Positions 1-20,064 of a DNA stretch of 20,064 bases are shown one piece after another (the stretch's first letter is position 1; each line of letters starts with the position of its first letter). Below the pieces are notes generated by a model. It searched no databases and was not told the DNA's origin. It saw nothing but the letters and a program-made list of their open reading frames with translations. Where the stretch lies: assembly GCF_000150275.1 (NCBI RefSeq), contig NW_002060989.1, positions 1-20,064 of the forward strand, in the 5' to 3' direction. Position numbers and translations under genes: made by a program. The DNA is from Trichoplax adhaerens (lineage: Eukaryota; Animalia; Placozoa).

Positions 1-17
1 TGATGTATGAAATTTTT

Positions 18-1238
18 CCAAAGTTATAAATAAATACCCGAATACAAGGCAAACTTAAATAAATAAATTCATTTCCTCGGTTATAAACCGCTTATTCACT
101 AGAAATTAGTTTGTTTAGGATCAGCAAAGTGCAAAGCAATAAAAAGGCTAGAAATAGAATACTATTTGTTCATTTAGCAGCGCCATTATCGATAAAGGTA
201 AATTTAAGAAAGAAAAAATGATTTTGAATTCTTTTGCATCACACTTCTGCTTTTAGTACCGGTATCTATTTCGACCGCTTTTAATAGCTTTGAGTGGTTC
301 AGTTAAAGGTTACAGGAAAAGTTTATCAATTTTATTACTGCTGAGATATTTTCCTATTCCAAAGTTTATCGATTTCACCACTGCTAAAATTTATGGAGTT
401 TAGCAATTCTGGAATACTTTCCCGTTCCAAAAGTTAGAGATTTTATTAATGTTAAAATGCTTTCCTAATCCATTAATTACGTTCGTGAGCATATCAATAG
501 ATTAGCTAGCTGTGAGGTTGATAGATCAAGAATCTTCAAAACTTTCGAATATTAAGATTTATTGAACAAAACCTCGCTAACGAAGATATAACATAATCGA
601 TTAGCCGAGGATCTCTAACGAGAAAGAACTATCTTGCTATAATAAGCTCCTCGCTTATATACTTTTCCGCGTTCGCAGTCTTTTAGCACCTTACTTACTA
701 CACACTTCAGTATTAGCATCTCAAATACAGGACAGTTTACACCTTTCATGTAAAGCTCTAGTGTGAGCACTGTAGCGCTCTTCTTCAAAAGGATTACAGT
801 TACTAAACTAGCTATATTTAATACTTAAGCCTCCAACAAGAATATCTATCACATATTGAACACAGTAACTACGGTAGACATTACTAAATATATTATCAAC
901 TTAGAATACAATATTACACTGTCTTGCTCTAGCTAAGGAATGATTTGAAAAATTGATTTCCAATTTCGTTGCATTACTTCGGCTTTTAGTATTTATTTCG
1001 ACCGTACTTAATAGCTTGAAGTAGTTTATAATATAGATTTTATCTATACTAAAATACTTTCCTATTTCATTAATAGTGTTCACGAATATATCAATAGGAT
1101 ATTGAGCTAAATGCAGTAACCATCTAATGCATTTCTAAGTCTCGTTGATTAATCGCATAATAAAGATTTATTTATTGACATGATTTCATCGTAGATTTTC
1201 CCAGCGACTACTAAAGTAATACTACCTTGGATGTCGAT
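18..1238 (+). promoter_or_regulatory. Copy A upstream region homologous to 13890-14525; putative 5'-UTR intron 198-1194
   Basis: Shared blocks CCAA(A/G)GTT(A/G)TAAATAAATA, ATTATC(G/A)ATAAAG|GTAAATT (198 and 14234), ATTGAACACAGT, and an AG acceptor 44 or 50 nt before the ATG (1194 and 14475). Confidence 0.5.
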
Positions 1239-2577
1239 ATGGGTAACCATATGAATAAACTTGATAAACTCTCTGTAGATGAAAAAACTGTTCTATGTCA
1301 ACTCGCCGAAGTAAAACGTAAAACTAACGATCTTCAAACGGCGAGATTCTATTATGAATTAGTCGCTAAACAAATGCTGGCTAAAAATGCTAAACACGGC
1401 GGACAAGAAGAAAATTTATGTTACATCTACTATTTGCTATCGAAAGTTTGCTTACTAGGCAAGGAACTCTTGCTATCTGAGAAATACAATCGAAAAGCAG
1501 AAACAATTGCTCAAAAAATGAATGACCAACCTCGAATTGCTGAACTCTTGGATATACGAGGTGATATTAGACGGCTTGAAGGTAAATATGAACAAGCTAT
1601 TGAGGACTTGGAGAAATCGCTCCAGATAAAGTTTCAAATAGTCGGAGCCAGCGATAGATCAACAGGTTACACTTATTATAAATTGGGAAAAGTTTATTTT
1701 GAACAATCGAAATACGACCAGGCTATGTCGCTTTACCATAAAGCTATGGATACTAGAAAAAATTCATTTGATGAAGATGATGCTGAATTACACCACGATG
1801 TGGGACTCGCTTATTCGAGATTGCTTCTATACGACAAAGCTGAAAAGATGTTTAACAAAGCATTAAATATAAAATCAAATTTGCCTGAAACCAACGAAAA
1901 GAGTATTGGTAATTCGTGTCACTGCTTAGGCGTTATTTATTACCGTCAATCAAAATATGAAATGGCACTAAGGATGCATCAACGTGTTTTAGCAATCATG
2001 ATAAAAAGTCCTGGTAAAAATCATTCCGGTTTTGCTAGATCATACTTTCAGCTTGGAGTTACATATTTTAAATTAGCCAAGTATGATGAAGCCTTGGATA
2101 TGCATAAAAGAGCTTTACATCTTTGGCCACAAATGGGGAAGGGATATCAAGTAAATGTTGCCGCATCGTTTGAAAAATTAGGGATTACCTACCATCACTT
2201 ATGTCGATATGTAGATGCTATCTCAGCTTTTGAAAAGGCCTTGAAAATTTGGTGTGAATTGTATGGAAGTCAGCACATGAAAGTTGCAACTAGTTATAAT
2301 AATATTGGAATAGCTTATGGTCGTCTATCACAACACGACAAAGCAATAGATATGTATGAAAAGACCATGAAAATTTTAATCCATTTAGGTAGGGAAGGTC
2401 TCGCTCAGATGGCTATCGTAAGCAGTAATTTGAATAAGATTTTGAATGAACAGAATAAAGAGGATAATCACTTTCGCCATAATACTGCAACCAGAGTCCG
2501 GATTTGTGATCACAGTTGCAGCACTACAGTTCAACGACCTAAATCCTATCCAACTGAAACTGAAAATAAAAATTGCG
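1239..2577 (+). CDS. Copy A exon 1: TPR repeat array (about 8-9 repeats of ~42 aa, kinesin-light-chain-like)
   Basis: ATG at 1239 (MGNHMNK) aligns with the copy B start. Repeats follow the pattern A-x-S-Y-x-x-L-G-x-x-Y-x-x-x-x-x-Y-x-x-A-x-x-x-x-x-K-A-L. Donor G|GTAATG at 2578. Exon length is 1339 nt, identical to copy B. The ORF tail 2578-2651 is intron read-through. Confidence 0.92.
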
Positions 2578-2674
2578 GTAATGTTCAAATTGTATCGTTT
2601 CGATATTTTTTAGTCTTTTTATTAGCTCCATTCGTGGCTAATGCTAAATAAAGATGCTGATATTTTAAAACTAG

Positions 2675-2731
2675 AAAGTAGAACCAAGTTCTGCCACATG
2701 GAATCAAGCATTGACGATGATGAAGAATCGT
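2675..2731 (+). CDS. Copy A exon 2: 57-nt acidic linker exon (ESRTKFCHMESSIDDDEES)
   Basis: CTAG| acceptor and |GTATGT donor, phase 1-1. Same length and position as copy B 15977-16033. Confidence 0.8.
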
Positions 2732-2878
2732 GTATGTTAGCGTTATAGCTAAATGTACTATGCTTTTATCTTAAAATATTTCAGCCATCATCTTCGCTTG
2801 CTTATTCTTATGGATAGTCAATGTACCGGTGTTTCTTAGCTTCAGATTAAGCAATAGTTTGCAATATATTTATTTTAG

Positions 2879-2953
2879 CAATTGATCACTACGAAAAAAT
2901 GGGAGACATTTCTAGCTTGGGATGTCTAGATAACAACCATGAAGAGAATCGAG
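2879..2953 (+). CDS. Copy A linker exon 3a, 75 nt (SIDHYEKMGDISSLGCLDNNHEENR)
   Basis: TTTATTTTAG| acceptor and G|GTAATA donor, phase 1-1, open frame. Homologous to 16188-16262. Confidence 0.8.
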
Positions 2954-3030
2954 GTAATAAAGATATTTCATTATTTATAAATTAGCTATTTATTAAGATT
3001 AAGGAATAATTTCCAATATATTTATTTTAG

Positions 3031-3105
3031 CATTTGACCTCTACGCATCGATGCGAAGCATTACTAGCACTGAAAGTCTAAATGATAACCATGGGGAGAA
3101 TAGAG
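3031..3105 (+). CDS. Copy A linker exon 3b, 75-nt tandem duplicate (AFDLYASMRSITSTESLNDNHGENR)
   Basis: TTTATTTTAG| acceptor and G|GTAATA donor, phase 1-1, open frame, similar to exon 3a. Confidence 0.78.
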
Positions 3106-3401
3106 GTAATATAGAAGTTTCATTATAAAAAACAAGTGGAAGACCGCGAGCATTGTTCGTGGTTGACGTATAAAATGCCGTAAAAGAAGTCCATTAACGA
3201 TAAATATGTACGCGTTTAACATAATAATTAAGTTACTATTTTTCGTACTCTAATTTAATTGCAATTACTATATTAGCATTACATTTGCGCGTTTAGCGTA
3301 TAATTGTGTCACAGAATGATTATATTTTCATATATACATATGGATAGCTAAGGTATTTCTTAGCGTCAGATTAAGCAATCACTCTAACGTATTTATTTTA
3401 G

Positions 3402-3471
3402 CATCTTACATTAGCGAAATGATGGAAAACATTGATAGCAATGAACGTCTAGATAATAATCATGTATGGAG
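3402..3471 (+). pseudogene. Copy A linker exon 3c: degenerate third duplicate (70 nt, frame-breaking)
   Basis: Same acceptor context and upstream intron motif (TTTCTTAGC-TCAGATTAAGCAAT) as exon 3a, but 5 nt short before the homologous donor GAG|GTAGTA. Confidence 0.65.
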
Positions 3472-3723
3472 GTAGTATAAAAACATCATTATACTCGTAT
3501 AAGATTTGTTACATTTACTCGGTTGACTTACAGTACAACTTTATAATCTATTTAAAAGCGAAAATATAAATCGAATTCATCGAAAAGATGCAATTTATGC
3601 TTATAAATGGACTGTTTAACCATCTTTTTTGATTTTGTTTTGTTTGATAGCTGTAAAATGCAAATTCTATTTCAATATATCGTTTTCTTAACCTTTTATT
3701 TCATTTTCTTTTGCTAATACTAG

Positions 3724-5984
3724 TTCATAATTATGAAAATGACCATTTTCAAGCTTTCGTCAAAACATTGAAGGAAGGTGAATGTCGTAGTAATTTTACA
3801 CGAATTATGATTTTTGGCCCTGACAATGTTGGAAAATCTTCCATAATGAAACTGTTTACTGAAGAGGGACTTCCTTGCGGTATGGCTCAGACAAACATTA
3901 CGGGGAACACGAATAAAATGCTTAATGAGATATTTTACAATATTTGTAACAAAACAGTATGTGATTATCGAAATAGCGTGAATAACAAAATTTTTGATGC
4001 AGTGGAGAGGATCAGACAAAAAAACTTTATGTCAAATAATGATGGTGGCTCCGAGAGTAATCAAGCATTCAATAATGTACCATCTTCCTCTCCGAATAAA
4101 GAAATGGACTCGTCGATCGCAAGGAATAAAATGTAACACCATTTAGGCTCAAGTTCCTTTTTAATAGCCGACAGCAAACCACTTTTAAAAGAGTCCATTA
4201 ATTTAGATAGTCAAAGTAACCCTTTAGACCAAAGTATAGACCGCAATGGAGAGTCTGTATTTCTTTGGCAGCATGCAGATACACCTCTTATGGCAAGTCT
4301 TCAAATTAATTTCTTAGACATTTACAAAGAATTATGTCAGCGCCAATTGCAAATGTCTAATTTGGCGGATACTGAAGACTGCCAATATGGGAAATTGTGG
4401 GATTTTGGTGGCCATTCTATTTACAATGTTACTCATCAACCCTTCATATCAGCTAATGATATCTATATTCTTGTCTTCAATATTGCTCACAATATCAACG
4501 ATAAAATAGTAAAAAGAGATGGCTTCATAAGCGATATGACCTATTTACAAGTTGTGCAGGAATGGTTAACTTCTATTATTGGCACAAATAGCTGTCGGGA
4601 AAAGATCCAAGCAAAACGCGATCAGCATACAGAAGAATACTGCCTGCCGGTGGTTATTTTGGTTGCCTCTCACGCTGATAAGATTGAAAGAGAATTGGAA
4701 CAAATTAGAAGATTTAAACGATTTGAACAGGCTCTTATTTCAAATCTACCAGCGTATCGATGCAATATCTATTCCTCCCAAATTATATTTAACTGCAATC
4801 CAAAAGATAATTGCCAGTCTGTAGTCGAACAACGACGAGAATGCTGTCGCCGTTTACATCATATCATTAATAAGCTTGCAACATCAATATCGTTCATACG
4901 CAATGCAGTTCCAATTCGATGGTATGTTACAGCAGAAATTATGTATGTCATAGCCAATAAACGATTAGAGCAAGAGCCTAGCTGTGCTAGTAGCAATGGT
5001 CTAGAAAAGGGTAGAAAGATCGTAAGGGAGGAAGAAGTACGCCAGTTAGCACGAGATTATGGACTGTATGAGAATGATGAAGATTTACGCTCTATGCTGC
5101 AGTACCTACATGATCTTGGCGAAATTGTATACTGTCCTACAGGGACAGTCGATGGGATTGTTGTGCTAGAAGTAGATTGGTTATTAAATATCTTTCGTGA
5201 AACTATTTATTTAGATACATGTTTATCCAAAACTGCAACCGTAATTGACGATTATCGACAAGCGGTAATTACTGGTAAGATATCGAAGAAATACTTTGAT
5301 TATATGCTACAAGGATTTGATTTAGATGAGCATGATAGGGAATTGGTATTAAAATTAATGGTAAAGTATGATATCATTTGTCCTATTCAGTCTGATGATA
5401 AACAAAATCACTAGATCAACTCTATTTTGTACCCTACTTACTTCAGCCTGATATATTTTGATTTAGCAAGATATACTCTATCCGATTGGCTGTATATTGG
5501 ATACGCGCGCAGCGATATTCCTTATATCTCAGATAGCATTTATTACAGCCTGCTTTCATCGTGCTCGAAAGAATGGAATAATTCTTTAGTGAAATTATAT
5601 CATCATGGCGCTAAATATTACTTGAAAGATAGTTATTCCTATATCATTATTGAGAAAGGTCAATCTCATATTGGGATTCAAGATTATTATCAGAATGAGC
5701 ATGAAGATAAAGATCTCCGTGTAATTATGAAAACTGTAAAAGAATTCATTCACATCAAGCGTCCTCAAGATTTAATAAGAAAGAAGCTAACGGCAATAGT
5801 CAAGCAAAGACTACCTAAATTCAAGAGCGTAGACAGCGGATTTTATGTTTCATGTATCATATGTCAACAATTTACTCGCATAGAGCCTGATAAAAAATTG
5901 AGTAATTTCAATTTAGTTCATTGCATTCACTGTAATTTGAAATTTAACAGCTTATCAATTAGTGATTGGATGCTTTACAAGTAG
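3724..5984 (+). pseudogene. Copy A Roc GTPase + COR + Cys-motif exon, interrupted by stops
   Basis: Acceptor CTAG| at 3723. G1 GPDNVGKSS (3816-3842), G3 LWDFGG (near 4398), G4-like VASHAD (near 4668), COR signature LQYLHDLGEIV, CIIC...CIHC (5853-5933). ORFs at 3711, 4290 and 5427 are all in the same frame, separated by stops. Confidence 0.88.
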
Positions 5985-6071
5985 TTAGCTCATTGCTTTT
6001 CAAAATTTATTTCTAGGCAATTTTATATAATTACAATGGTTATTTTATAAAATGACTGGATAGCTTTAATA

Positions 6072-6682
6072 ATGAGTTATGATGAATTAGGCTCTATGCT
6101 GTAGTACCTACATGATCTTGGCGACATTGTGCAATATCCTAAAGGAACAGTCAACGGGATTATTGTGCTAGAGGTAGCCTGGTTATTAAGTATCTTTCGT
6201 GAAACTATTTATTTAGATACATGTTTATCCAAAAGTGCAACCGTAAGTTACTATTATCAGCAATCGGTTACCATTGGTAAGATATCCAAGAGATACTTTG
6301 ATTATATGCTACAAGGATTTAATTCATACGCGTATGATAAGAGATTGGTATTAAAATTGATGGTAAAGTATGATATCATTTGTCCAATTCAATCTGATGA
6401 TAGACAAAATTCACTAGATCTACTCTATTTTATACCTTCTTTACTTCAGCCTGATGCAGAATATTTTGATTTAGCAAAGTATACTCGATCCAAATGACTG
6501 TGTATTGGATACGAGCATAACGATATTCCATATATCTCAGATAGCATTTACTACTGCCTGCTTTCATCGTGTTCGAAAGAATGGAATCATTCTCAACTAG
6601 AATTATATCACCAATTTAATAAATATTACTTGAAAGATAGTTATTCCTATGTCATTATTAAGAAAGATCAATCTCATATTCG
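6072..6682 (+). pseudogene. Partial COR-domain paralog fragment (third copy remnant)
   Basis: Aligns to about 5070-5670 and about 18190-18800. In-frame TAG at 6102 (CAG in the paralogs) and TGA at 6495 (TGG in the paralogs). No flanking Roc sequence. Confidence 0.88.
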
Positions 6683-6683
6683 G

Positions 6684-7155
6684 TACGTAAAAGAGATTTA
6701 AAATCTTAATAGTTACTACCGTATTAAAAATCTGCAATATCTGTTACACTTTTTATGACTACTCGTTCAACTATTGAGCTAGCCAGCGAATATACTCTCC
6801 GACCTATCGGTTATACCAGTTAATTACTACTATACTATACTAAAATATACGAGTGTACGTAAAATCACAACAATATCATATCTAAATCAACTATTGTAAT
6901 TTCAATAAATATGGGTGACTAAATTATTTTATGTTCGTAAAAGAGATTTAAAATCTATATATTACCCGTAGCAAATATTCTGTAAAATGATATTTCATTA
7001 ACTGTCTTAATTTAGGTAAATATAAAGTGACTAAGTTATTCTGAGTTCGTAGCAGAGATTTAAAATCTGAATAGTTATAGTAGGAATCTGTAATAGAATA
7101 TCTTACAGCGGTCATAATTTAGATCAATACAAGGTGATATGATTGTTCTAATTTC
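6684..7155. repeat. Degenerate direct repeats (~110-bp period between the last two) with core CGTA(A/G)(A/C)AGAGATTTAAAATCT
   Basis: Core at about 6686, 6936 and 7048. GTGACTAA(A/G)TTATT precedes the second and third copies. Confidence 0.65.
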
Positions 7156-8679
7156 ACTATTTTTCTAAAATAAACTTCATTTAGGGGAAATTAGCATATA
7201 GATACCTATACGATCGTATTTCTATGTCTTGTTTTTAATAGCTATCTACGTATGTTGGTCTTTAAATCCCATCCGGAAATTATTGGTGAAATCACGATCA
7301 TGAATTTTAGAATGAAACTGAAATTCGATTCATTAAGTACCTTAGGAGCAATGATTCAATGACATCATAAAGTCTTTGTAATTATTGCTTTAGTAAATTT
7401 AACCTAGCAAGTAAATGTAAAGATTTGTAATTTAAAATTCTTTCTTTAGTCTACTTTAGTCGTAAAGATTACTTTCTTTTACTGTTAAAAGAAATCGTAA
7501 ATCGGTAGGAATTGTAAGAAAATCAAGGGTATCGATGAAGGTTATGATTTAGTCATTGTAGCTTAACAACGAATAAATTATTAGAAAAGCGAACACCTTT
7601 CATATATTGTATCACTATAGAAAATGCATTTATTCTAGCCGTGAGGTACAGCACTAAATGCTAAGGATTGTCACTCAATTTCAAATTTAGGTAGCATTCT
7701 TTGATCTATGTAATACTTGACTTTTATCCAGAAGTCTTTTTACGTATAGTGCTAGAGCTACTTGGCCGTTGAGACTAATTGCATGCAGAATATTGTAGTC
7801 AATATAGATATTCCAGTATTGTCGTACTAAAAATATCTATGCGTGCAAAGGTTTTTCAACATAACTCAGAGTATTTCATATGATATTGCCGTCCATAAGT
7901 ATCAGTAGACTAATTACATCAATGAAGTACTCTGGCAATACTCTCGTATAATATAGCAAATGTGTATATTAAGATTTAAATAAAAGATACCAATCAACCG
8001 CTAATATTAAAAATAAAATTCAAATTGAAAATGTGTTTATCACTGAATATCGTGGCTTAAAAAATTGAGGAGCGAGGTTTTCACGACTGTTTTCGACTAA
8101 CTTGAGACCAGATCTTTATTCGATTTAACCCCATTCTTTCTAGCATACTGAGGATCAGTGTGATAATAATTATTTGCTATTCTAAATATGGCTTTTGATG
8201 TATGTTACTGGTTTTATTGTAGTTAATTCTTGAGATTCATCTATCTTATAGTGGTTGGAGGTAAATATTGTCGCTAGAAAATTTCATCTTGCTACTATAC
8301 GTATTTCATAGTTTTGATAAAATTAATCATCAATTCAACTGAGTCAACTAAAGATAAGTTTGGTTAGCAATCATCTGCTGGGGTCTTATACGATGAAGTC
8401 CTAAAGTAGGGGTATAGTAATAAAATAGGTTCGAATAGACAGATTATATTATTTTTGTTTATTCTCTATCACTTTCTACTGACTCTGCTTCTAGATTTCT
8501 ATTTATTGCTACAAATGCGGGATTTGCTACAGAGTTCAAAGCTTTACAGATTCTTTCTAGTAACTTGCTAGGTGCATAACTCAAATATGGACAATCTTCT
8601 ACCGTCAGTAAATCGTGTTTAAGGTATATTTCTAATCCAATTAGACTAATAGTTAATTCATAAATTGCATTTTCGCAAT

Positions 8680-10900
8680 TTCTTGCAGATAATTTGTTTT
8701 ATAAAAACAGTTATTGGCGAGTATGGTCATTAGAAAGTTTTATCTGGCTTTATTGGTGGCTTGTTTTTGACTTTTTTAAGCTAACTTGAAGCAAACTCTT
8801 TTGCTCAATTGAGCTGAATTATACCTAGTATGCTTAAAAATTTTTCAATGGGAGGTTCTCGAATGAGATTAATGCTAACTACTCGTATAGTTATTTTATT
8901 ACTTCAAGTATAATCATTGATATATATTGCCAGGTATTGTTACAAATCTCATCGGAGTATAGGGTTCCAAGTCTTTAACTAATTACTGTAGTGTATTTTG
9001 TAGTGCAACCAATTCATATTAAATCATAACAAGTATATTTTACGCACTTTTTACAGATCATTTGTTTCATAACAACAGTTGCTGGCAATAATCGTCATTA
9101 GAATATTCTATCTAACTCTATTAGTCATTTACTTCATGATTACTTTAAACCAACTGGTGACAAACTCTTTTTCTCCTTTAAATCAAATTTTATCTAGTAC
9201 GCTGAGAATAGTTTCAACGGCGGATTCTTTAATGAGAGTATTGCTAGCTATAATTATTTTACTACTCCAAGTATGATTATTGAAGTATGCTGCCTCATAT
9301 ATTTTACACATTTTTAAAGATAGTTTGTTTTATAGTAATAATTATTGGCAAATATTGCCATTCGAATGCTCCATCTAACTCTATCGATTATTTATTTAAT
9401 GGCTCTTATGAATAAATTTGAGTCAAGCTCTTTTCCTAGATTGAACTGAATCTCACCTAGTATGTTAAGAATATTTTTCAATAGCGGGTTCTTGAATGAG
9501 AGTAAGGCTAACTATAATGATGTTGTTACTGCAAGTATGATTAATTAATTATTGACGTATGTTACCCTGACATATTTTACATATTTCTTACAAACAATTT
9601 GTTACACATTTTACCTCGTATGCTTTTATAGTAATACTTGCTGGCAAATAAAAATATTTCCAATAACGGGTTCTCCAATGAGAGTAAGGCTAATTATAAT
9701 TATTAAAGTATGTTGGCTGGTATATTTGACGCATTTCTTACAGTAAATTTGTTTTACAACAACAGTTGGGTACAAGTGTCGTTATTAGAAAGTTTTGTCT
9801 GACTCTAACGCTTATTTATTTTATGACTATTTTAAACAAACTTGAGATAAGCTCTTTTGCTCAGTTGAACTAAATTTTACCTAGTACGCTGAGAGTTTAG
9901 CTACCCATTCAGAGTCTTAGATCCTTAGAGTTAGATTAAGTCATGACAGTTATTCAATAAAGGAATAGTCAATTTCTAATTGTCTAGTGTGTCCTAATTG
10001 CTAGTTCCACAAGGATATAACAAGAGTATTTTATAACAACGAAATCTCGAGTGAAAGTAAAGCTAACGATGATGATGTCGTTACTCCAATCATGATTATA
10101 GACATATATTACCATGGTATATTCTACGTATTTCTTACTGTCACAATTTCACTTCTGCGACAAGGTAACGTACAGTAAAAGTCTATAAGTAGTTGCTGAC
10201 TTAAACGCCCTTTTACTTAACGTTAAATACATTCAGTAAAAGACTGTAAAGATGAAACTTTTATTAGCAAAGATACATCTACAACTTTTTACCACCCCAC
10301 TCAACTCAAATGTTCCCGTTTATATAGGAACCGCCTAATTTGTAAACAACAACAGTATTATTATTATACCTTACTAGGAGAAACATCTCGAACTGAGATG
10401 TTCCTTACATAGCTTTTCTATCAGTAAATATTTTGAAACTCTTACTCATACTTAATCTTAATCTAAGCTCGTAGGTTGTCTAATTCAACTATCATCAACT
10501 AGAACTTGAATCATCTTACTGCTATCTGTCACATAATTACAATCAATATCAAATATGTAATGAACTATTACAAACAACATCCACGTTAAGTCATTACTTA
10601 TCTTACCTAGCACTACAAATATGGATATTCTCCATACTAGCTACTACTGCACTTATTTAACTATCCTAATAACAAGGCAACATTGTAACACTTACAGATA
10701 GTTTGTTTTATAATAAGCGTTGTTGGAAAGTATCGTGATTGGAATATTTCATTTATATCTCGGTTATTTGTATGATGACTATATTAAAATAACTTGAGAC
10801 TAGCTCTTTTGCTTGATTGAATCAAATTTCATCTAGTACCCGGTATGCTGAGAATATTTTCAATATAATTTGTTTTATAATAACAGTTGTTGGCAAATAC
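8680..10900. repeat. Degenerate ~260-bp repeat family, partly tandem (about 7 full or partial units)
   Basis: Recurring blocks TTACAG-ATA(A/G)TTTGTTTTATAA, GTTGGCAA, AACTTGAG..AGCTCTTTT, CTAGTA(C/T)GCT, ATGAGAGTAAGGCTAA, TTACT(G/C/T)CAAGTATGATT. Units start near 8689, 9057, 9320, 9590, 9743, 10045 (partial) and 10699. Confidence 0.8.
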
Positions 10901-11074
10901 TTGCAATGAAGGTTAATATTTAGTATTCTCCTTCATAGAGTATTTCTTTTTATTTGGTAGATTTAATGATGAACTGCAACGTAATTTAAGATTTTAATGT
11001 AATAGCTCGTAAATAATATCTGAATTAGTTTAGATGGTTGTGGATGGATTGTGTCAACCAGTATGATGTGAACC

Positions 11075-11414
11075 NNNNNNNNNNNNNNNNNNNNNNNNNN
11101 NNNNNNNNNNNNNNNNNNNNNNNNNNNNNNNNNNNNNNNNNNNNNNNNNNNNNNNNNNNNNNNNNNNNNNNNNNNNNNNNNNNNNNNNNNNNNNNNNNNN
11201 NNNNNNNNNNNNNNNNNNNNNNNNNNNNNNNNNNNNNNNNNNNNNNNNNNNNNNNNNNNNNNNNNNNNNNNNNNNNNNNNNNNNNNNNNNNNNNNNNNNN
11301 NNNNNNNNNNNNNNNNNNNNNNNNNNNNNNNNNNNNNNNNNNNNNNNNNNNNNNNNNNNNNNNNNNNNNNNNNNNNNNNNNNNNNNNNNNNNNNNNNNNN
11401 NNNNNNNNNNNNNN
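11075..11414. other. Assembly gap (N run)
   Basis: 340 consecutive N. Confidence 1.
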
Positions 11415-12311
11415 TATCGATGTGATGTGATATATATGTATGTACTATATGGAAGGGAATCGTAGAGTATAATCTGTACTAAGATATGTACGATTGATCG
11501 CTAGTATCCTAGTTGGTAACTATTTTTAGCTTACTTTAGAATTTATGATTCATAGTAGAGAGACCATCAACTGTTCTGTGAAGCACATAAAATGGTGGTG
11601 TAGTCGAGAATACTTTAGTTTTGTTTTGCTGCAGTTCATGGGTCTATTGAAATCGTGGATTAACTACTTAGAAGTTGATTGTTGAGATAAAGTAATTATT
11701 GAATCAGAAGTCGTAAGTTTCTCAGTAAGCTGTAATAATATCTTCTTTTAAGTAGCGTAAAGTATTTTAAGATAGACGATGATAGAAGGTATAAAGGATT
11801 TTATTGAGATACAAGTTACAGGCTAACAATGATATGGTTGTTATAGATAAGGTATTTGAGATAGCAGGAACGTAGGAACTGACTAACGAGTTAGCGTACA
11901 AGGGTATTTATAGGTTTTAGATGGGATTGAGATAATGTCTTTATATGTATAGCATGTCGTCTATATGTGGTCATGATGTCGTACATTATGAATGTAATAC
12001 AATACAGTACTTAAACGGCTTATGATAAGTATTCGTATATTAGGATATTACTATACTAGGCGTCTTCTATATAAGATCATAATGTTACAAGCGTTATAGA
12101 TATTGTCGGTTATAAGCTTTAAAATATGTTTAGAATTTAGCCACATTGTTATACCTATTTTTTGCAAAACTCACTGATTACTGTGAGTGGCTTGATAGAT
12201 AAAATATAGTAAATAAATCAGTTTTATCCCCTAATCTCCGCCTTATTTCAAAGTCCAATCATAAAGCAATTTAGTAACACTAAATTTTTATATATTTTCA
12301 TCGAACTCTTT

Positions 12312-12750
12312 CGTTTATTTGTTTTATGACTATATTAAACTAACTTGAGAGAAGCTCCTACGCTCAATTGAATCAAATTTTACCGGGTATACTAAAAATA
12401 GATTCAATAGCGGGTTTTGTATAAGGCTAACTATATTTATTTTACTACTGCAAGTATGATTCTTGATATTTGTAACCTGGTATGCTCTAGATATTTCTTA
12501 CAGGTAATCCCATCCACCCCGCCCTTGAAACGAACAGCGCGGGGGTATTTATACTACTGTTAGATGACTTTGATTATACATGGTATAAAGTTACTGAACC
12601 TCTGGCAGGTCTATGACAAATGATAATACAGTACTATCTGCTAAATGAGCGTATTATCGTAAACCGTCAGCAAAGCGATGGGAGTTTGTACTAGTTTATT
12701 TTAAAATAAGAGTGTCGTTGGCAAGTATCGTTATGAGAATATTTTATCCA
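12312..12750. repeat. Further unit(s) of the ~260-bp repeat family, split by the Helitron-like insertion
   Basis: 12312-12507 matches the family up to TTTCTTACAGGTAA. 12695-12750 resumes it (TTTATTTTAAAAT..GTTGGCAAGTATCGTTATGAGAATATT). Confidence 0.8.
12508..12694 (+). mobile_element. Non-autonomous Helitron-like element, 187 bp
   Basis: Starts with TC, ends with CTAG, sits between host A (12507) and T (12695), no target-site duplication. Subterminal hairpin CCGTCA-gcaaag-CGATGG (perfect TGACGG in the second copy) lies 9 nt before CTAG. Removing the element restores the host repeat. Confidence 0.8.
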
Positions 12751-13200
12751 GCTACAAGTATGAAAGCCAACCTGATTACTGTGGACTATGAAGGTGCCCA
12801 AAGATGGCTACTATAGGATGGCAAAGAGTTCAATGCCAACTTGTGGTTATTTATCTAACATGAGGTGTACATATTTGAAAGAATGAGACTATGAGTATAA
12901 ATTAAACTCATTAGCGTAGTATCGTGTAAGCTTTGAAAACGATAAATAAACCACCAAGACTTGATTTAAGCTAAAATGATGTAATCATTTATGCTTGCAT
13001 GCACTACTAACAAGTCATGAAATACGAGTACTTTCGAGGTTTTCTACGATTAGCAAAATAAAATGGCGTACTACTGTTTGGCAAACTAATGATGTTTAGA
13101 TGTATCATAGATAAGCACAACTTGTCATGTAGACCATCCAATTGGAAATTCAATTCTATTGGCAAGAATTTTAAAATAGTCTGATGATCCTTTGACGTCA

Positions 13201-13315
13201 CTAGTACAAACTCCCGTCACTTTGCTGACGGTTTACGATAATGTGCTCATTTAACAGATAGTACTGTATTACCATTTGATAGACCTGTCAGAGGTTCAGT
13301 AACTTTATACCGTGT
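13201..13315 (-). mobile_element. Second copy of the Helitron-like 3' end, opposite orientation (5' end uncertain, possibly 13501)
   Basis: Reverse complement matches 12578-12694 with about 8 substitutions and a 2-nt indel by eye. Ends with CCGTCA-gcaaag-TGACGG-gagtttgta-CTAG followed by T. Confidence 0.75.
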
Positions 13316-13492
13316 TCTGTATGCTGTAGAAATGTACCTAAACTTGACGAGCTGAAATGAATCAAATTAGTGCATATTATCTCTCAATTTAAATTTGTTT
13401 AAATAATATTGTCGCTATCGTCATATCTTAACCTGTTATGCCATTGTCATGAGATATATTGCTATAGAGTAATCCGTATGAAGAAAAGCGGC

Positions 13493-13622
13493 AGGGGTAG
13501 ATATTATTAATGCTAGAGGTTTAGTTTATCCTGTATCATAATACTTACGTTATCAAATTAATTTTACCTTGCTGTAAATATAGAAATTGTTGTTAAAGTG
13601 ATTAAAGCTAATATCTACCCCT
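13493..13622. mobile_element. Possible MITE: 130 bp bounded by perfect 14-bp inverted repeats
   Basis: AGGGGTAGATATTA (13493-13506) and TAATATCTACCCCT (13609-13622). No clean target-site duplication. Confidence 0.4.
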
Positions 13623-14525
13623 AATCGAAGCTACTATTAGTGAGAAATTGAATCATTTATTTCTATGTAAATGGCAAAGTATTAAGATACTATGAATCGT
13701 ATACAATTCGAATTGACTGAGATAGTGGAATAAAATATGTAAAAATTGGCCAAACATTAGCATCAACGTTCCCTTAATTGATTGGTGCCTCGTATATTGA
13801 CAGAATGAACGTAATCTCTACCCTAAGGGTGCTTTTAAAAGATGTTTACGTACTTGAGAGAATTTGATTCCTATTACGTAACGATGACTTCCAAGGTTGT
13901 AAATAAATAGGTAGATTCTAAGCTTGAAATAAACAAATAAATTCGTCCCCAGATCGATTTCTAGGAATCGTTTCATTGACGATCCGTAAGATCCATCCTA
14001 ATGCAAGCATGAGATATTCTATCGCGAAGAAAATTGATAAACTGTGAAATAACAAGGTCGATTGACGGAATTTCCGATAGTTTCATTGATTACGTTAGTA
14101 GAAGGCGAAGAATAGCTTACGAAATTTGGCAATTACCCAATTTACTTCTCTGTGAGAAAAGAATCCGTCAATATATACGATAGTGTATAAGAAATACAAA
14201 TTTCGCCATTGCATTGCGTTATTATCAATAAAGGTAAATTCGATTTTCAGTATTACTAGTAGGAGAATTTTTAATAACTTGAAGTAGTATAACAGTTACT
14301 CAAAAATGTATCGATTTTCCTCGTATAGTTGCTAAAATACTTAGCTGTTGTGCTAATATTTTTCACGGAATTATCGGTAGATTAGATACGTAACTCACAA
14401 TTGAACACAGTTATGATTCTCATTATGTAAACTTAGGTTAGAGATTTAATTTTGATACATAAAATTCTAACCTAGGTTTACTCAGCAAGCTACCGAAGTA
14501 CGGTAAGAATATCTTAGGAATCGAT

Positions 14526-15864
14526 ATGGGTAACGACATAAATAAGTTTGACAAAATTGGTTCAGAAAATTTAGATCCTCTATACCAATTTGCTGATCAC
14601 AAATATAAGGGTGGAGACTTACGAATGGCGAAATACTATTATAAATTGATCGTTGAGCAAATACGGGCTAAAAATAGTATAAAAAACGGATCAGAAGAAC
14701 TTTTAACTAAGACTTATTATTCGTTATCCAAAATTTATTTACAAGAAAAGAAACTCTCTGTAGCGGAAAAATATAATCGAAAAGCGGAAGCATACGCTCT
14801 AAAATTGGAAGATCAAGCTCGAGTGGCCGAAATTTTAGATATGCGAAGTGACATTAGAAGGCTTGAAGGCAAATATATTCAAGCCATTGATGATTTGAAG
14901 AAATCACTCTCCTTGAAATTTCAACTAGTAGGAACCAATGATAGATCGACCAGTTACAGCTATCATAAATTGGGAAAAGTTTATTATTCGCAATCGAAAT
15001 ATGAAGTCGCTTTGTCGTTCTACCGTAAAGCTTTGGATACTAGGAAAAATTCATTAGAAGAGAATAATGTAGAATTATATCAAGACATGGGATTTGCTTA
15101 TTCACGTTTATCGAGATTCAATGATGCTGAAGAAGTGTATAAGGAGGCATTAAATATTAAATTAACCTTGCCTGCATATAACGACACGAGTATTGCTAAT
15201 TCATATTGGTGCTTGGCCGTCATTTACTATCGCCAATCAAAATATGAAATAGCTCTAACAATGAATCGAACTGTTTTAGAATTGAGGATAAAAAGTCTTG
15301 GTGAAAGTCATCCTAGTGTTGCTAAATCGTACTATCATCTTGGGCTTACTTATTCTAAACTAAGCAAGTATAACGAAGCCTTGGATATGCATAAGAATGC
15401 TTTACACCTTCGGTTACATATTGGGAAAGAAAATCAAGTGGATGTTGCCTTGTCCTATGAGAAATTAGGCGTTAACTATGATCACCTCTGTCGATATTCA
15501 GATGCAATCTCAGCTTTTGAAAAGGGCTTGAACATTTTGCAAAAACTATATGGAAATCAGCACATAAAAGTAGCCACCAGCTATAATAGTCTTGGAATAG
15601 TCTATTGCCGTCTAGGACAATATGGCAAGGCACAAGATATGTATCATAAGGCCATGCATATTTTAATTAATCTAGGTGGAGGAAACTACGCTCAGATAGC
15701 TACCATATGCAATAATATGGGTAAAATTTTCAATGGCCAGCATAAACAGGATTGCTATTTTCATTTTAATGACACAAATAGTATTCTGCTTGAAAGTCAT
15801 AAGAGCAATGTTGTAGATCAACGGCCGAAATCCTATCCAATTGAAATAAAATCTAAAAGTTACG
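14526..15864 (+). CDS. Copy B exon 1: TPR repeat array
   Basis: MGNDINK start. ~42-aa TPR repeats such as HPSVAKSYYHLGLTYSKLSKYNEALDMHKNAL. Donor G|GTAAGT at 15865. Confidence 0.93.
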
Positions 15865-18800
15865 GTAAGTCTAAATTAAATCGTTTGGATGTTTCTTAGT
15901 CCTATTGTTTGTTGATTCAATGTTATATTTATATTATAATCAATACTAAAGATTAGTGCTGATATTTTAACACTAGAAAGTACAGTCGAATATTGTACGA
16001 TGGAATCAGAATTTCACGAAGATGAAGAATCATGTATGTGAGGGCTTTAAAGCTAAGCCAGCTATGCTTATATTTTGAGATATTCTAATTATCATTTACG
16101 TTTGCACATTTTTATGGATAGTTAAGGTATTTCTTAGCACCAGATTAAGCAATAATATAGAAATTATTTGCAATATTATTATTTTAGCATTTGATACCTA
16201 CAAAAAGATGCAAGGAGTTAGTAGCGTGGGAAGTCTAGATCCCGATACTGGAGAGCATAGAGGTAATATAGAAATTTCATAATATAAAGTTTGTTACGTT
16301 TACTTTAGTGTAAGAAATAATTATCGTAGCAAATGAAATTTAAAATTTAATTCGTTTCAAATGATACTGTAAGAGTTTTAAAATAGATTGCTGAACAATG
16401 TATTTAACCTTGTTTATTTGCTAGCCAGCAGAATGTAAAGTTCATTAACTAAATACATGGCTTGCTGTTAACAGTAGTTAATGTTTGAGTAAAGGGCTAT
16501 CGAACTAACTCACTATCATAATAGATCAGGGCTAATATGCGCGTATATATATAATCTACAAGTATATATCATGGCTAACTTACTATCATAATATTTTCAA
16601 GTAGAAGAGATATTACTGAAGTACTATTAAGCTGTTACGTAGATTATTAGTGTAAGAAATAATCACCTTAGTAAGTGAAAATTGAAAGTCCAATTGGTCC
16701 TAAAAGATGCAATACGTGCATATCAATGGATCGCTTAATGATATACTGATCTTGTTTATTTGCTGTCTTGATAGCTGCAGAATGTAAATTTTATTAAGAC
16801 ACAGTACATCATTTTCTTAATACTTCACTTCATCTTTTTCTATTCATAGGAATTCATATTCAAGAAAAGGACTATTTTCAAGCTTACGTCAAGGCGTTAA
16901 GGGAAGGCGAATGTCGAAGTAGTTTTATACGAATTATGATTTTTGGCCCTCCCAATGTTGGTAAATCGTCTATTATGAAAGTATTTACAGAACAGGGACT
17001 TATTCACCATGCAAGCAGGACCAAAATTGCAGAAAATACCAATAAAATGGTCAATCAAATATTTTATAATATCTGTGATAAAACCGTATGTAATTATCGT
17101 AATATACTGGATAAAAAAATTCTCGACACTGTGGAAAAGATCGATCAGCAAAATCTCATGACAAATCATGATGGCTATTTCAAGGATAGTCAAGTATTCG
17201 ATCACTTACCATCATGGTCCTCATCGAATGAGGAAATGGAATCACCGATCGCAATAAATAAAATGCAACATCATTTAGGTTTAAAATCATCTGTAACCGA
17301 CAGTAAACAACCTTTAGAAGAGATGCTTCATTTAAATAGTCAATGTAACCCATTAGATAAAAGTATAGATAGCTTAGAAGAATCTGGTTTCCATTCACAA
17401 TCGACAGATAGTTCTCCTATGGCAAATAATTTCTTACAGATTTACAAAGAATTCTATCAGCGCCGTTTGCAGATAGCTGATTTGGCGGATACTGAAGACT
17501 GCCAATATGGGAAATTGTGGGATTTTGGTGGCCATTCTATCTATCACGTTACTTATCAACCTTTCATGTCAGCTAACAGTATCTATATTCTTGTTTTTAA
17601 CATTACTCAAGATATCAACGATAAAATAGTGAAAAGAGATGGCTTGATTAGCGATATGACCTATTTACAAGCTGTACAGGAATGGTTAACTTCTATTATT
17701 GGCATAAATAGCAGCCGAGAAAAGATCCAAGTAAAAATCGATCAGCAAACAGAAGAATATTCCCTGCCAGTCGTTATTTTAGTTGCCTCTCATGCAGATG
17801 AGATTGAAAGAGAAGGGCAACGAATCAGAACATTTAAACGATTTGAACAGGCTCTTATTCAAATTTACCAGAGTATCGATGCAATATTTATTCTTCTCAA
17901 ATTATATTTAACTGCAATCCAAAAGATAATTGCCAGTCTATAGTCAAACAACGACAAGAATGCTGTCGCCGTTTACATCATATCATTAATAAGCTTGTAA
18001 CATCAATATCGTTCATGTGCAATGCAGTCCCAATTCGATGGTATGTTATGGCAAAAATTCTGCATTTAATAGCCAATAAACAATTAGAGCAAGAGGCTAG
18101 TAGTGCTAGTAGCAATGGTCTACAAAAGGGTCGAAAGATTGTAAAGGAGGAAGAAGTGCGCCAGTTGGCACGAGATTACGGGCTGTATAAAAATCATGAA
18201 GATTTACACTCTATGCTGCAGTACCTACATGATCTCGGCGAAATTGTCCACTGTCCTATAGGAATAGATGATGGGATTGTTGTGCTAGAAGTAGATTGGT
18301 TATTAAATATCTTTCGTGAAACTATTCATCTAGGTACATGTTTATCTAGAAATGCAGGTGTAACTTATGATTATCAGCAAGCGCCTATCACTGGTAAGAT
18401 ATCTAAGAGATATATTGATTATAAACTACAAGGTTTCAATTTAGATGAGCATGATAAGAAATTGGTATTGAAATTAATGGAAAAGTATGATATCATTTGT
18501 CCAATTCAATTTGATGATAGACAAAATTCATTACATCAATATTATTTTGTACCCTATTTGCTTCAGCCTGAAGTAGAATATTTTGATTTAGCAAGATATA
18601 CTCTATCCGATTGGTTGTATATTGGATACGAGCACAACGATGTTCCATATATCCCAGATAGCATTTACTACTGCCTGCTTTCATCGTGCTTGAAAGAATG
18701 GAATAATTCTCAACTGGAATTACATCATCAGTGTGCTAAGTATTACTTGGAAGGTAGTTACTACTATATCATTATTAAGAAAGAAAATTCGCATATTGGC

Positions 18801-20044
18801 CTTCAATATTGTTATCAGAAGGAACATAACCATAAAGATCTTGGTGTCATTATGGAGACTGTAAAACAATCAATTTGCTATGAACGTCCTCAAGACTTAA
18901 TAAGAAGGAAGCTAAAAGCGATAGTTAAGCAAAGATTACCTAGATTTAAGAGAGCAGACTGCCGATTTTATGTCAAATGTACCGAATGTCAACAAATTAC
19001 TGGTCTAGAGCAAAGTAAAAGATTAAGTAATCCTAGTTTAGTCCATTGTATTCCATGTAAGTTGCAATTTCACACTTCATCGATTGATGATTGGATGATT
19101 TATCGGCAAGAGAACTTATTAGGTAGGTCTAATCATACTGTATATAGAAATTATAAGCAGAGGAATACCAATCTTAGGCAATTCTACTGCTTGAAAAAAT
19201 AACGTTGTTATAAAGCGTCATTTTTACTCTACCACCTACAATTTGCAATGGAAATTCCCTTCAACAATTAAGACAAATTTAGTAATATCTTACTCTAGTC
19301 TTGTGCATCTAATCGTTACACAAATTATCTTAATTCCAGGTAGAGAGAAAAGCAACGAGGATCGTTATATTCATCATCGTCATGGTTAGTATTGCCATGC
19401 ACCAATGATGTCAAAGTCCAGCACAAAATTGATACTTCCATTTTTTCTTTATCTTATAGATGGACTTCCTCTAAATAATCCAAAATTACTCCCTGATGAT
19501 TCTGGTAAATATTTTATTGACATAGATCCTTCTTTTGGTAAATTTTTGGCTAAATTAATTTGCAAATTGGTTTTCATTGTAATAAATTTCTAATGGACAG
19601 TTAAGTCGCCTTCATTGGCATGACATAATGAATACAGACTATGCAAACATTGTCATTGAAATTCTTTACTAAGCCCGCCAAGTTGTAACGATCATTTTAT
19701 CATATTGACGATAAAATTCTATTTTGTGCATTAGCTTGATTATTAAATTGATTGCTTCAATAGTATATTGATATGTATTTACGATATCGTCTCTTTTGGC
19801 ATAGATCCTAGGAGATATTTTCCAGTGATTGCTAGAAGTATTGGAACAGACTGGCCTAAGCTGGCAGCTGAATTAGACCCCTATGTCGATATCGATCGTA
19901 TTAAAAGCGAGAATGTATTAGTATGGGATCAAGCCTTTAAATATTTACAATCATGGTACAAAAATTGCTACCAAAATGCCTCCATCAAATTGCTGAAAAA
20001 GGCTTTAAGAAATATTAAGAGAAATGATATCGTGAACTCTGTCG
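14526..20044 (+). CDS. Copy B: TPR-Roc-COR-Death domain Roco protein, at least 1358 aa, continuing past the window. Exons: 14526-15864, 15977-16033, 16188-16262, 16850-19122, 19340-19384, 19460-19504, 19805-20044
   Basis: All junctions are GT-AG and phase 1. All internal exons are multiples of 3 once one missing base near 17858 is restored, and the spliced frame is otherwise open. Confidence 0.82.
15977..16033 (+). CDS. Copy B exon 2: 57-nt acidic linker (ESTVEYCTMESEFHEDEES)
   Basis: CTAG| acceptor and |GTATGT donor; homologous to 2675-2731. Confidence 0.8.
16188..16262 (+). CDS. Copy B exon 3: 75-nt linker (SFDTYKKMQGVSSVGSLDPDTGEHR)
   Basis: TTATTTTAG| acceptor and G|GTAATA donor; single copy here. 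Confidence 0.8.
16850..19122 (+). CDS. Copy B exon 4: Roc GTPase, COR and CxxC-x19-CxxC motif, with one frameshift near 17858
   Basis: Acceptor TTCATAG| at 16849. GPPNVGKSS (16945), LWDFGG (near 17518), VASHAD (near 17788), LQYLHDLGEIV, YFVPYLL, CTEC...CIPC (18978-19058). Donor G|GTAGGT at 19123. Confidence 0.88.
19340..19384 (+). CDS. Copy B 45-nt linker exon (GREKSNEDRYIHHRH)
   Basis: TTCCAG| acceptor and G|GTTAGT donor, phase 1-1, open frame. Confidence 0.65.
19460..19504 (+). CDS. Copy B 45-nt linker exon (DGLPLNNPKLLPDDS); alternative in-frame donor at 19538
   Basis: Strong polypyrimidine tract with TATAG| acceptor and G|GTAAAT donor, phase 1-1. Confidence 0.7.
19805..20044 (+). CDS. 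Copy B Death domain exon (240 nt)
   Basis: Translates as DPRRYFPVIARSIGTDWPKLAAELDPYVDIDRIKSENVLVWDQAFKYLQSWYKNCYQNASIKLLKKALRNIKRNDIVNSV. This fits the Death-domain pattern IAxxIGxDWxxLAxxL...IDxI...QAxxxLxxW...A(S/T)xxxLxxALxxIxRxDIV. Flanked by CATAG| and G|GTAAGT. Confidence 0.9.
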
Positions 20045-20064
20045 GTAAGTGCTTCTCGATGTGG

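Follow-up and report, generated by a model that had tools for sequence, protein, structure and literature searches.

A TPR-Roc-COR-Death gene of Trichoplax adhaerens, member of a catalogued and tandemly amplified placozoan Roco family, carries a one-base frameshift in the assembled genome

Near the end of the window, by which we mean the whole stretch of 20,064 nucleotides (nt) analyzed here (the first 20,064 bases of scaffold C1368 of the placozoan Trichoplax adhaerens; scaffold, 51,001 bases; genome, 105.6 Mb in 1414 contigs), open reading frames for a TPR array, a Ras-like GTPase and a COR domain follow one another on the forward strand, and they raise the question of whether several genes lie here or only one, and of what kind of protein a single gene would encode. 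An earlier note on this DNA had proposed a hidden multi-exon gene that runs on into a Death domain and may act as an innate immune receptor resembling the NLR proteins. Our results indicate, with high probability, that the stretch holds the T. adhaerens orthologue of RDD37541.1 of the sister lineage Trichoplax sp. H2, that is, an eight-exon, already catalogued Roco gene with seven exons in the window, the intact protein of which would act as a GTPase-driven, death-fold switch. The encoded protein begins at its N terminus with TPR repeats and an acidic linker, followed by Roc, in which the interswitch insert is long, by COR-A and COR-B, and by a Cys4 motif that resembles a zinc ribbon; a second linker then leads to the Death domain, behind which the chain ends in a short tail.

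How these parts are joined can be read from H2. A paralog Roc-COR exon and then TRIADDRAFT_62437, the Joint Genome Institute (JGI) model of an upstream tandem copy (hereafter copy 1, the gene under study being copy 2), led us to two adjacent H2 genes on one contig, RDD37542.1 and RDD37541.1. Protein-to-DNA mapping places RDD37541.1 on the window at 100% identity in seven blocks, which give the seven exons (Table 1); the H2 gene models were made by an evidence-based prediction that used transcriptomes (PMC6057997). All introns between exons 1 and 7 (E1-E7) are GT-AG introns of phase 1, and E2, E3, E5, E6, and E7 have lengths divisible by three and are therefore symmetric 1-1 exons. The eighth and last exon, 26 codons of RDD37541.1, falls in a long run of Ns that begins at 20065, directly after the last exon in the window. 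Because its open frame enters this same gap, the Death exon was missing from the list of open reading frames on which the earlier note drew; the borders given there for it, 19805-20044, are nevertheless exact, as the H2 protein maps to them at 100%.

That the TPR, GTPase, and COR frames splice into one protein had also been claimed. From TPR to Roc and from COR to Death this is borne out, via phase-1 GT-AG introns, but Roc and COR are a single exon, which a 1-nt deletion splits into two frames. For the junction between TPR and Roc, the beginning of the G domain is telling. The ATG that opens the listed GTPase frame (16936) lies three codons 5' of the P-loop (16945), and two elements of the G domain, its N-terminal helix and its strand beta1 (family consensus K.Y..AY.KAL..G.C....IR), are found in frame 5' of that ATG, with no start codon; a conserved G-domain start that lacks a start codon of its own must therefore be supplied by an upstream exon. 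A first guess that led from a TPR donor at 15720/15721 straight to 16850 was dropped, as the H2 protein continues through exon 1 to 15864 and then through two micro-exons. In the linker region, exons and introns alike align at about 70% between copies 1 and 2, so that a comparison of conservation is uninformative there. Intron 3 (E3-E4, 587 nt) contains a direct duplication with a 41-nt core (16305-16345 and 16647-16687; 83% identity; spacing, 342 nt), which helps to account for the distance of about 1 kb between TPR and Roc here, the open frames of the sampled paralogs being much closer together or overlapping.

All four of the domains claimed for the gene, TPR, Roc, COR, and Death, are borne out by Pfam. 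Searches were run with single exons or with the H2 protein RDD37541.1 (1395 amino acids, aa), and a joined exon string was built only for placing the premature stop described below. The TPR_12 profile matches the frame at 14526-15899 with an E value of 1e-47, Roc matches the frame at 16936-17943 with 34.4 bits (cut-off, 27), and COR-A matches the frame at 18015-19202 with 36.2 bits (cut-off, 35.3), a score that falls slightly below the cut-off, to 32.8 bits, on full-length RDD37541.1. The Death profile (PF00531), the absence of which from 19805-20044 would have spoken against the proposal, matches at 19804-20064 over profile positions 3-82 of 86 (E 2.8e-10; 40.6 bits; cut-off, 22.6), and among PDB sequences, the exon matches the ankyrin-1 death domain (1.7e-6), followed by FADD and PIDD. 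RDD37541.1 itself returns TPR, Roc, COR-A, and Death. Its full length gave no match to kinase, Ank, NACHT, or NB-ARC profiles (Pfam; E <= 0.01 for NACHT and NB-ARC), which extends to the whole protein the description of the gene as kinase-less and leaves Roc as its sole NTPase domain.

The fold of the central exon places the protein among the Roco proteins. An AlphaFold2 (AF2) model of the intact H2 Roc-COR exon (757 aa; alignment of 22 sequences) reached a mean predicted local distance difference test (pLDDT) of 77 and a predicted template modeling score of 0.79, and its top 35 fold matches in the PDB are all Roco proteins, with LRRK1 first (4e-15), followed by LRRK2, Chlorobium tepidum Roco, and Methanosarcina barkeri Roco2. 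The sequence profile of the family also matches C. tepidum Roco (CtRoco), M. barkeri Roco2 (MbRoco2), and LRRK2. COR-B gave no Pfam match and is supported by fold comparison, including a match to the isolated C. tepidum COR (3dpt_A; TMt 0.68; E 1.5e-08). Roc, COR-A, and COR-B, by which Roco proteins are recognized, are thus all present. The Roc insert is predicted to consist of two long helices (exon residues 82-106 and 189-208) around a disordered stretch of about 80 residues (pLDDT below 50 at 106-187), and it is present but variable in the aligned paralog. The Cys4 motif behind COR-B is probably a zinc ribbon of four short strands in the model, which would bind zinc.

Table 1. Features of the Roco locus in the window (positions are those of the whole stretch)
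Feature	Position	Strand	Content and evidence
Exon 1	14526..15864	+	Start codon (MGNDINK...), N-terminal region, TPR array (TPR_12/TPR_10 type, ~residues 60-410); donor G/GTAAGT, phase 1; 100% identical to RDD37541.1 residues 1-446
Exon 2	15977..16033	+	57-nt acidic linker micro-exon, ESTVEYCTMESEFHEDEES; phase 1-1; AG/GTATGT; 100% identical to RDD37541.1 residues 447-465
Exon 3	16188..16262	+	75-nt linker micro-exon; phase 1-1; AG/GTAATA; 100% identical to RDD37541.1 residues 467-491
Exon 4	16850..19122	+	Roc, COR-A, COR-B, Cys4 motif; 2273 nt (H2, 2274); 100% identical to RDD37541.1 residues 492-827, then 828-1250 in another frame
G1/P-loop, GPPNVGKS	16945..16968	+	Translation; G32, P33, G37, and K38 nearly invariant in the 22-sequence family alignment
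Roc insert, ~125 residues	17095..17475	+	Between beta2 and beta3; AF2 model and paralog alignment
G3, DFGG	17521..17532	+	Translation; D224 and G227 invariant
G4-like, SHAD	17788..17799	+	Translation; H314 and D316 invariant
1-nt deletion	17857..17859	+	TTT in copy 1 and H2, TT here (missing T at 17858); DNA alignments
COR-A	18123..18563	+	Pfam, 36.2 bits; genome scan match with the same coordinates
COR-B-like region	18573..18950	+	Approximate borders; the fold match to C. tepidum COR 3dpt_A and LRRK1/2 extends through it
Cys4 motif, CxxC-x19-CxxC	18978..19058	+	Follows COR-B; C710, C713, C733, and C736 invariant in 22 sequences; pLDDT ~90
Exon 5	19340..19384	+	45-nt linker micro-exon; phase 1-1; AG/GTTAGT; 100% identical to RDD37541.1 residues 1251-1263
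Exon 6	19460..19537	+	78-nt linker micro-exon; phase 1-1; AG/GTAAAT; 100% identical to RDD37541.1 residues 1264-1289
Exon 7	19805..20044	+	Death domain; 240 nt; phase 1-1; donor G/GTAAGT; 100% identical to RDD37541.1 residues 1290-1370
Copy 1 (TRIADDRAFT_62437)	1239..6680	+	TPR-Roc-COR to 5981; TPR, Roc, COR, then a partial COR duplicate

To call the gene hidden is apt for T. adhaerens but not for H2, where the orthologue is annotated. A query with the COR frame (length band, 217-691 aa) found no T. adhaerens model for copy 2 and no near-identical fragments, and a literature search on the locus identifiers found no paper. The automatic database name of RDD37541.1 is "Nephrocystin-3", and its TPR type is indeed similar to that of NPHP3 (TPR_NPHP3 profile, 100.5-109 bits; cut-off, 100). 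Nephrocystin-3 itself presumably has neither Roc-COR nor a Death domain, and the label looks like an automatic name transfer from TPR similarity only. Both tandem copies start with MGN..NK (14526-14546 and 1239-1259), a weak fit to a loose N-myristoylation pattern that we take to be G-{EDRKHPFYW}-x(2)-[STAGCN]-{P}; one other paralog checked starts differently.

The assembled gene departs from H2 by a frameshift between Roc and COR. In each of the eight paralog loci that were inspected, Roc-COR is a single open exon, 732-773 codons long, and it is one exon in the H2 orthologue as well, so that both domains lie on one polypeptide there, while the T. adhaerens assembly divides their frames. A paralog Roc-COR exon aligns colinearly with the window (tblastn), the frame changing from 1 to 3 between query residues 316 and 317 (nt 17858/17859) with no residues skipped, and in the DNA alignment, copy 1 reads CTTATTTCAAAT where copy 2 reads CTTA-TTCAAAT. 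The H2 locus is 99.88% identical to the window over 11418-20064 and differs from it within the gene at only two places, the missing T at 17858, which accounts for the one-base difference in the length of exon 4, and an intronic C/T at 19336. The Roc frame stops at 17941-17943, and the literal product is an 854-aa TPR-Roc fragment. An intron that would restore the frame from Roc to COR was sought and rejected: the 15 GT..AG pairs considered all have poor donors, and each removes 18-70 residues of a conserved, paralog-aligned stretch. An exact look-up in public assemblies found neither the frameshifted Roc frame nor the intact H2-type frame on record. Compared with H2 and with the T. adhaerens Roco set, the gene is 100% identical to RDD37541.1 in every window exon and shares with its paralogs an exon plan of TPR, Roc-COR, and Death; it departs from RDD37541.1 by the deletion and by the last exon, lost in the assembly gap.

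Judged from the alignments, this copy would be a null, very recent or allelic, unless it contains an error of the assembly. The first of these, namely, that the T. adhaerens copy is a young pseudogene or null allele in which a real deletion leads to a premature stop far 5' of four exon junctions and no full protein is made, is to our minds almost as probable as not. The deletion stands out against two independent comparators, copy 1 and H2, and indel polymorphism of about 0.1% has been reported for these genomes (PMC6057997). Several other family members have in-frame stops, which fits birth-and-death turnover. The adjacent copy 1 departs from H2 at three more sites, all of them disabling. Near 4125 it reads TAA for a codon that is Q in the H2 protein, and deletions of 1 nt and 5 nt at 5409 and 5453 create a TAG, the longer of the two being unlikely as a base-calling slip. 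The JGI model TRIADDRAFT_62437 bypasses these stops via invented introns. Against a real lesion in copy 2 stands the rest of the 5.5-kb gene, in which a single intronic base differs from intact H2, so that the lesion would have to be very recent; further, the missing base belongs to a homopolymer, and the scaffold is small and full of gaps, the kind of place in which errors of assembly are most to be expected.

The assembly around the gene is indeed fragmentary. More than half of the 51-kb scaffold consists of Ns, including a gap at 11075-11414 within the window, and the T. adhaerens assembly lacks both the final exon and about 1.2 kb of what follows it. Starting 1.2 kb past the window end, the H2 sequence matches another T. 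adhaerens scaffold, C1396 (832665-833443, about 832.7 kb; 96%), and C1368 therefore probably fits in a gap of C1396. Other Roco paralogs are also found on C1396, at about 0.92-1.06 Mb. Just 3' of the H2 gene, a segment of about 370 nt (positions 16650-17026 of the H2 locus) has copies with 72-80% identity on 12 or more scaffolds of T. adhaerens and is probably an interspersed repeat.

Copy 1 also documents the divergence within the pair. That the gene has diverging tandem paralogs was correctly seen earlier: copy 1, at 1239-5981, shares 70% protein identity with copy 2 in Roc-COR and 56% in TPR, and tandem clusters recur across the genome. The ratio of nonsynonymous to synonymous substitution (dN/dS, or omega) between the two is 0.46 for TPR (dN 0.29) and 0.36 for Roc-COR (dN 0.16). 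The partial COR duplicate (6063-6680) carries stops, and downstream of copy 1, we found no counterpart of exons 5-7 and no Death exon. The H2 orthologue of copy 1 looks intact; its model runs from within the Cys4 motif into the duplicated COR fragment and ends without Death.

Several observations weigh against our interpretation of the locus as a Roco gene with an intact switch protein. Owing to the frameshift at 17858, the copy as assembled cannot yield the full protein, and for the splicing of this locus in T. adhaerens, we rely on the H2 model and on the logic of the sequence. A single-sequence AF2 prediction of the Death exon gave six helices at low confidence (pLDDT 49.6). A homodimer prediction for COR (residues 346-757, two copies) scored 0.00, a result that says nothing for or against binding. 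Finally, dN/dS in the one paralog pair compared lies between 0.25 and 0.76 in all segments (75-codon TPR segments and Roc-COR segments).

The Roco family to which the gene belongs is specific to placozoans, has been amplified in tandem, and is already catalogued. Profile scans of the T. adhaerens genome returned at least 47 distinct COR-A loci and at least 110 Death matches; a Death exon lies downstream on the same strand in 20 of the 47 COR-A loci, at a distance of 1.3-2.3 kb in 18 of these 20, and tandem clusters of loci occur on C1392, C1404, C1398, C1389, and C1375. A few members have a Death exon upstream of Roc-COR (C1414:12750013 and C1413:143994). The uniform phase 1 of the introns fits domain shuffling around a constant Roc-COR exon. 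Civiero 2014 (PMC4104024) listed at least 17 T. adhaerens ROCO genes, in which Roc-COR is flanked by CARD or death domains, TPR or LRR repeats, AAA, TIR, and extra Ras domains (members include TRIADDRAFT_61714, 61019, and 61020), an account repeated by Teng 2024 (PMC11378527), and models from T. adhaerens and H2 that combine TPR, Roc, COR, and Death are already in UniProt and NCBI. The caution voiced in the earlier note that the family might not be wholly new was thus well placed: the architecture is not new, and the sister lineage H2 has an identical annotated orthologue.

To look beyond the placozoans, a full HMMER scan was run over 1.84 billion representative proteins, and it returned 626 matches. 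Those stronger than about 1e-28, among the ones looked up, are Trichoplax H1/H2 proteins or come from environmental contigs. The next matches are invertebrate proteins in which Roc-COR is combined with CARD (the brittle star Amphiura), with Bcl-2 and caspase (the annelid Owenia), with Macro and Death (the scallop Argopecten), or with DED, Macro, and Death (the feather star Anneissia). These nearest non-placozoan relatives are uncharacterized, and some may be merged gene models. Taken together, the relatives hint that death-fold Roco proteins form a wider group among animals.

Several better-known systems invite comparison with the protein. DAPK1, an animal Roco protein too, also has Roc-COR ahead of a Death domain at the C terminus. 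Unlike DAPK1, RDD37541.1 lacks kinase, calmodulin-binding, and ankyrin regions; the N-terminal module of the window gene is a TPR array, its Roc domain holds a long insert, a Cys4 motif is present, and the gene is not an orthologue of DAPK1. With LRRK1, LRRK2, and the C. tepidum and M. barkeri Roco proteins, it shares the Roc/COR-A/COR-B fold (E 4e-15 to 3e-07) and the position of repeats N-terminal of Roc-COR, but identity is only 11-16%, the repeats are LRR there and TPR here, the C-terminal partner is a kinase or nothing there and Death here, and the interswitch insert of about 125 residues is found here. NLR/STAND proteins, including the placozoan NB-ARC-TPR/WD40 proteins (Kamm 2019), offer the same combination of a repeat array, an NTPase switch, and a death-fold effector, with lineage-specific expansion and a similar kind of TPR; their switch, however, is a STAND ATPase rather than a Ras-like GTPase, and the order is reversed here, with the repeats N-terminal and the effector C-terminal. 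The gene is not an NLR by descent, and the likeness would be one of analogy only.

Also comparable are candidate immune Roco proteins from other lineages, in which Roc-COR stands between a variable repeat sensor and an immune or death output: the LRR-ROCO proteins of brown algae (Zambounis 2012; Teng 2024), the actiniarian groups NG1 (LRR-Roc-COR-TIR) and NG3 (kinase-Roc-COR-Death-TIR) (van der Burg 2016), and the bacterial AP-GTPase systems (Kaur 2021). They carry LRR, TIR, kinase, or GT4 where the present gene has TPR and Death, they belong to independent lineages, and their immune role has been proposed and in no case proven. The use of Roc-COR ("AP-GTPase") as the switch of NLR-like immune or conflict proteins has thus been published for bacteria (PMC8195603, PMC7159879), brown algae (PMC11378527), and sea anemones (PMC5094078). 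The survey of placozoan immunity by Kamm 2019, which reports that placozoans are without LRR-bearing NLRs, does not mention Roc or COR (PMC6321704).

A likely mode of action of the intact protein can be put forward from the analogy with Roco proteins of solved structure and from death-fold biology. Roc would pass its nucleotide state on via COR, and the conformation or the oligomeric state would change as a result. This change could expose the C-terminal Death domain, which would then recruit other death-fold proteins by homotypic contacts, while the N-terminal TPR array would serve as the ligand- or partner-binding, autoinhibitory end. Overall, the protein would be a GTPase-based signaling switch into death-fold pathways of the cell-death or innate-immune type. 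Support for a death or immune theme is comparative and comes from the death-fold fusions of the invertebrate relatives and from the at least 110 Death exons in the genome.

A more specific proposal is that the intact family serves as a pathogen- or danger-sensing innate immune receptor, a GTPase-based analogue of the NLRs in which TPR senses, Roc-COR oligomerizes, and Death recruits. The analogy is plausible and has already been made for other Roco proteins; as an account of what this family does, we regard it as tentative, and somewhat more doubtful than not. The layout of sensor, switch, and effector would suit it, as would the large, lineage-specific tandem expansion with decaying copies, the greater divergence of the TPR exon relative to Roc-COR (dN, 0.29 versus 0.16), the CARD, DED, Death, or caspase partners of the relatives in other invertebrates, and the similar proposals for Roco proteins of brown algae, sea anemones, and bacteria (PMC11378527, PMC5094078, PMC8195603). 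Yet omega stays below 1 in every segment, so that TPR shows no sign of diversifying selection, and the one pair compared does not display the receptor-like diversification that immune sensors would be expected to have. Further, TPR_12 arrays are general protein-binding scaffolds, the characterized animal Roco proteins (LRRK1, LRRK2, DAPK1) work in trafficking, autophagy, and cell death and not as pattern receptors, and Civiero 2014 suggested a link to chemotaxis or phagocytosis instead (PMC4104024).

That TPR and Roc-COR-Death are two adjacent genes wrongly merged in the H2 model is, by comparison, very improbable, for although repeat-rich multidomain gene models differ between the two Trichoplax annotations (PMC6057997) and the E3-E4 intron is long and holds a duplicated segment, the conserved G-domain start has no start codon of its own, every junction is phase-compatible with good GT-AG sites, a TPR_12 exon lies directly upstream on the same strand in seven of the eight sampled paralog loci, and more than 10 independent H2 and JGI models fuse TPR with Roc-COR.

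The reading of the locus as the orthologue of RDD37541.1 adds a gene model that is apparently missing from the T. adhaerens v1 annotation, corrects the misleading "Nephrocystin-3" label, and flags the frameshift. That Roc-COR may act as the switch of a death-fold signaling platform has been proposed several times for Roco proteins, and on that question, the window alone goes no further than the databases and the 2014 review. On a broader view, which we consider speculative and on balance unlikely, placozoans may use at least 20 TPR-Roc-COR-Death proteins as a GTPase-driven counterpart of the NLRs, in which ligand capture by TPR would drive the Roc-COR switch and, through it, a Death complex; an ancient animal "Roco-some" pathway would then have left its remnants in the CARD, DED, Death, or caspase Roc-COR proteins of echinoderms, annelids, mollusks, and hemichordates, with DAPK1 as its sole survivor among vertebrates. 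Regardless, the family is a reasonable place to ask whether Roc-COR switches a death-fold signaling platform in an early-branching animal.

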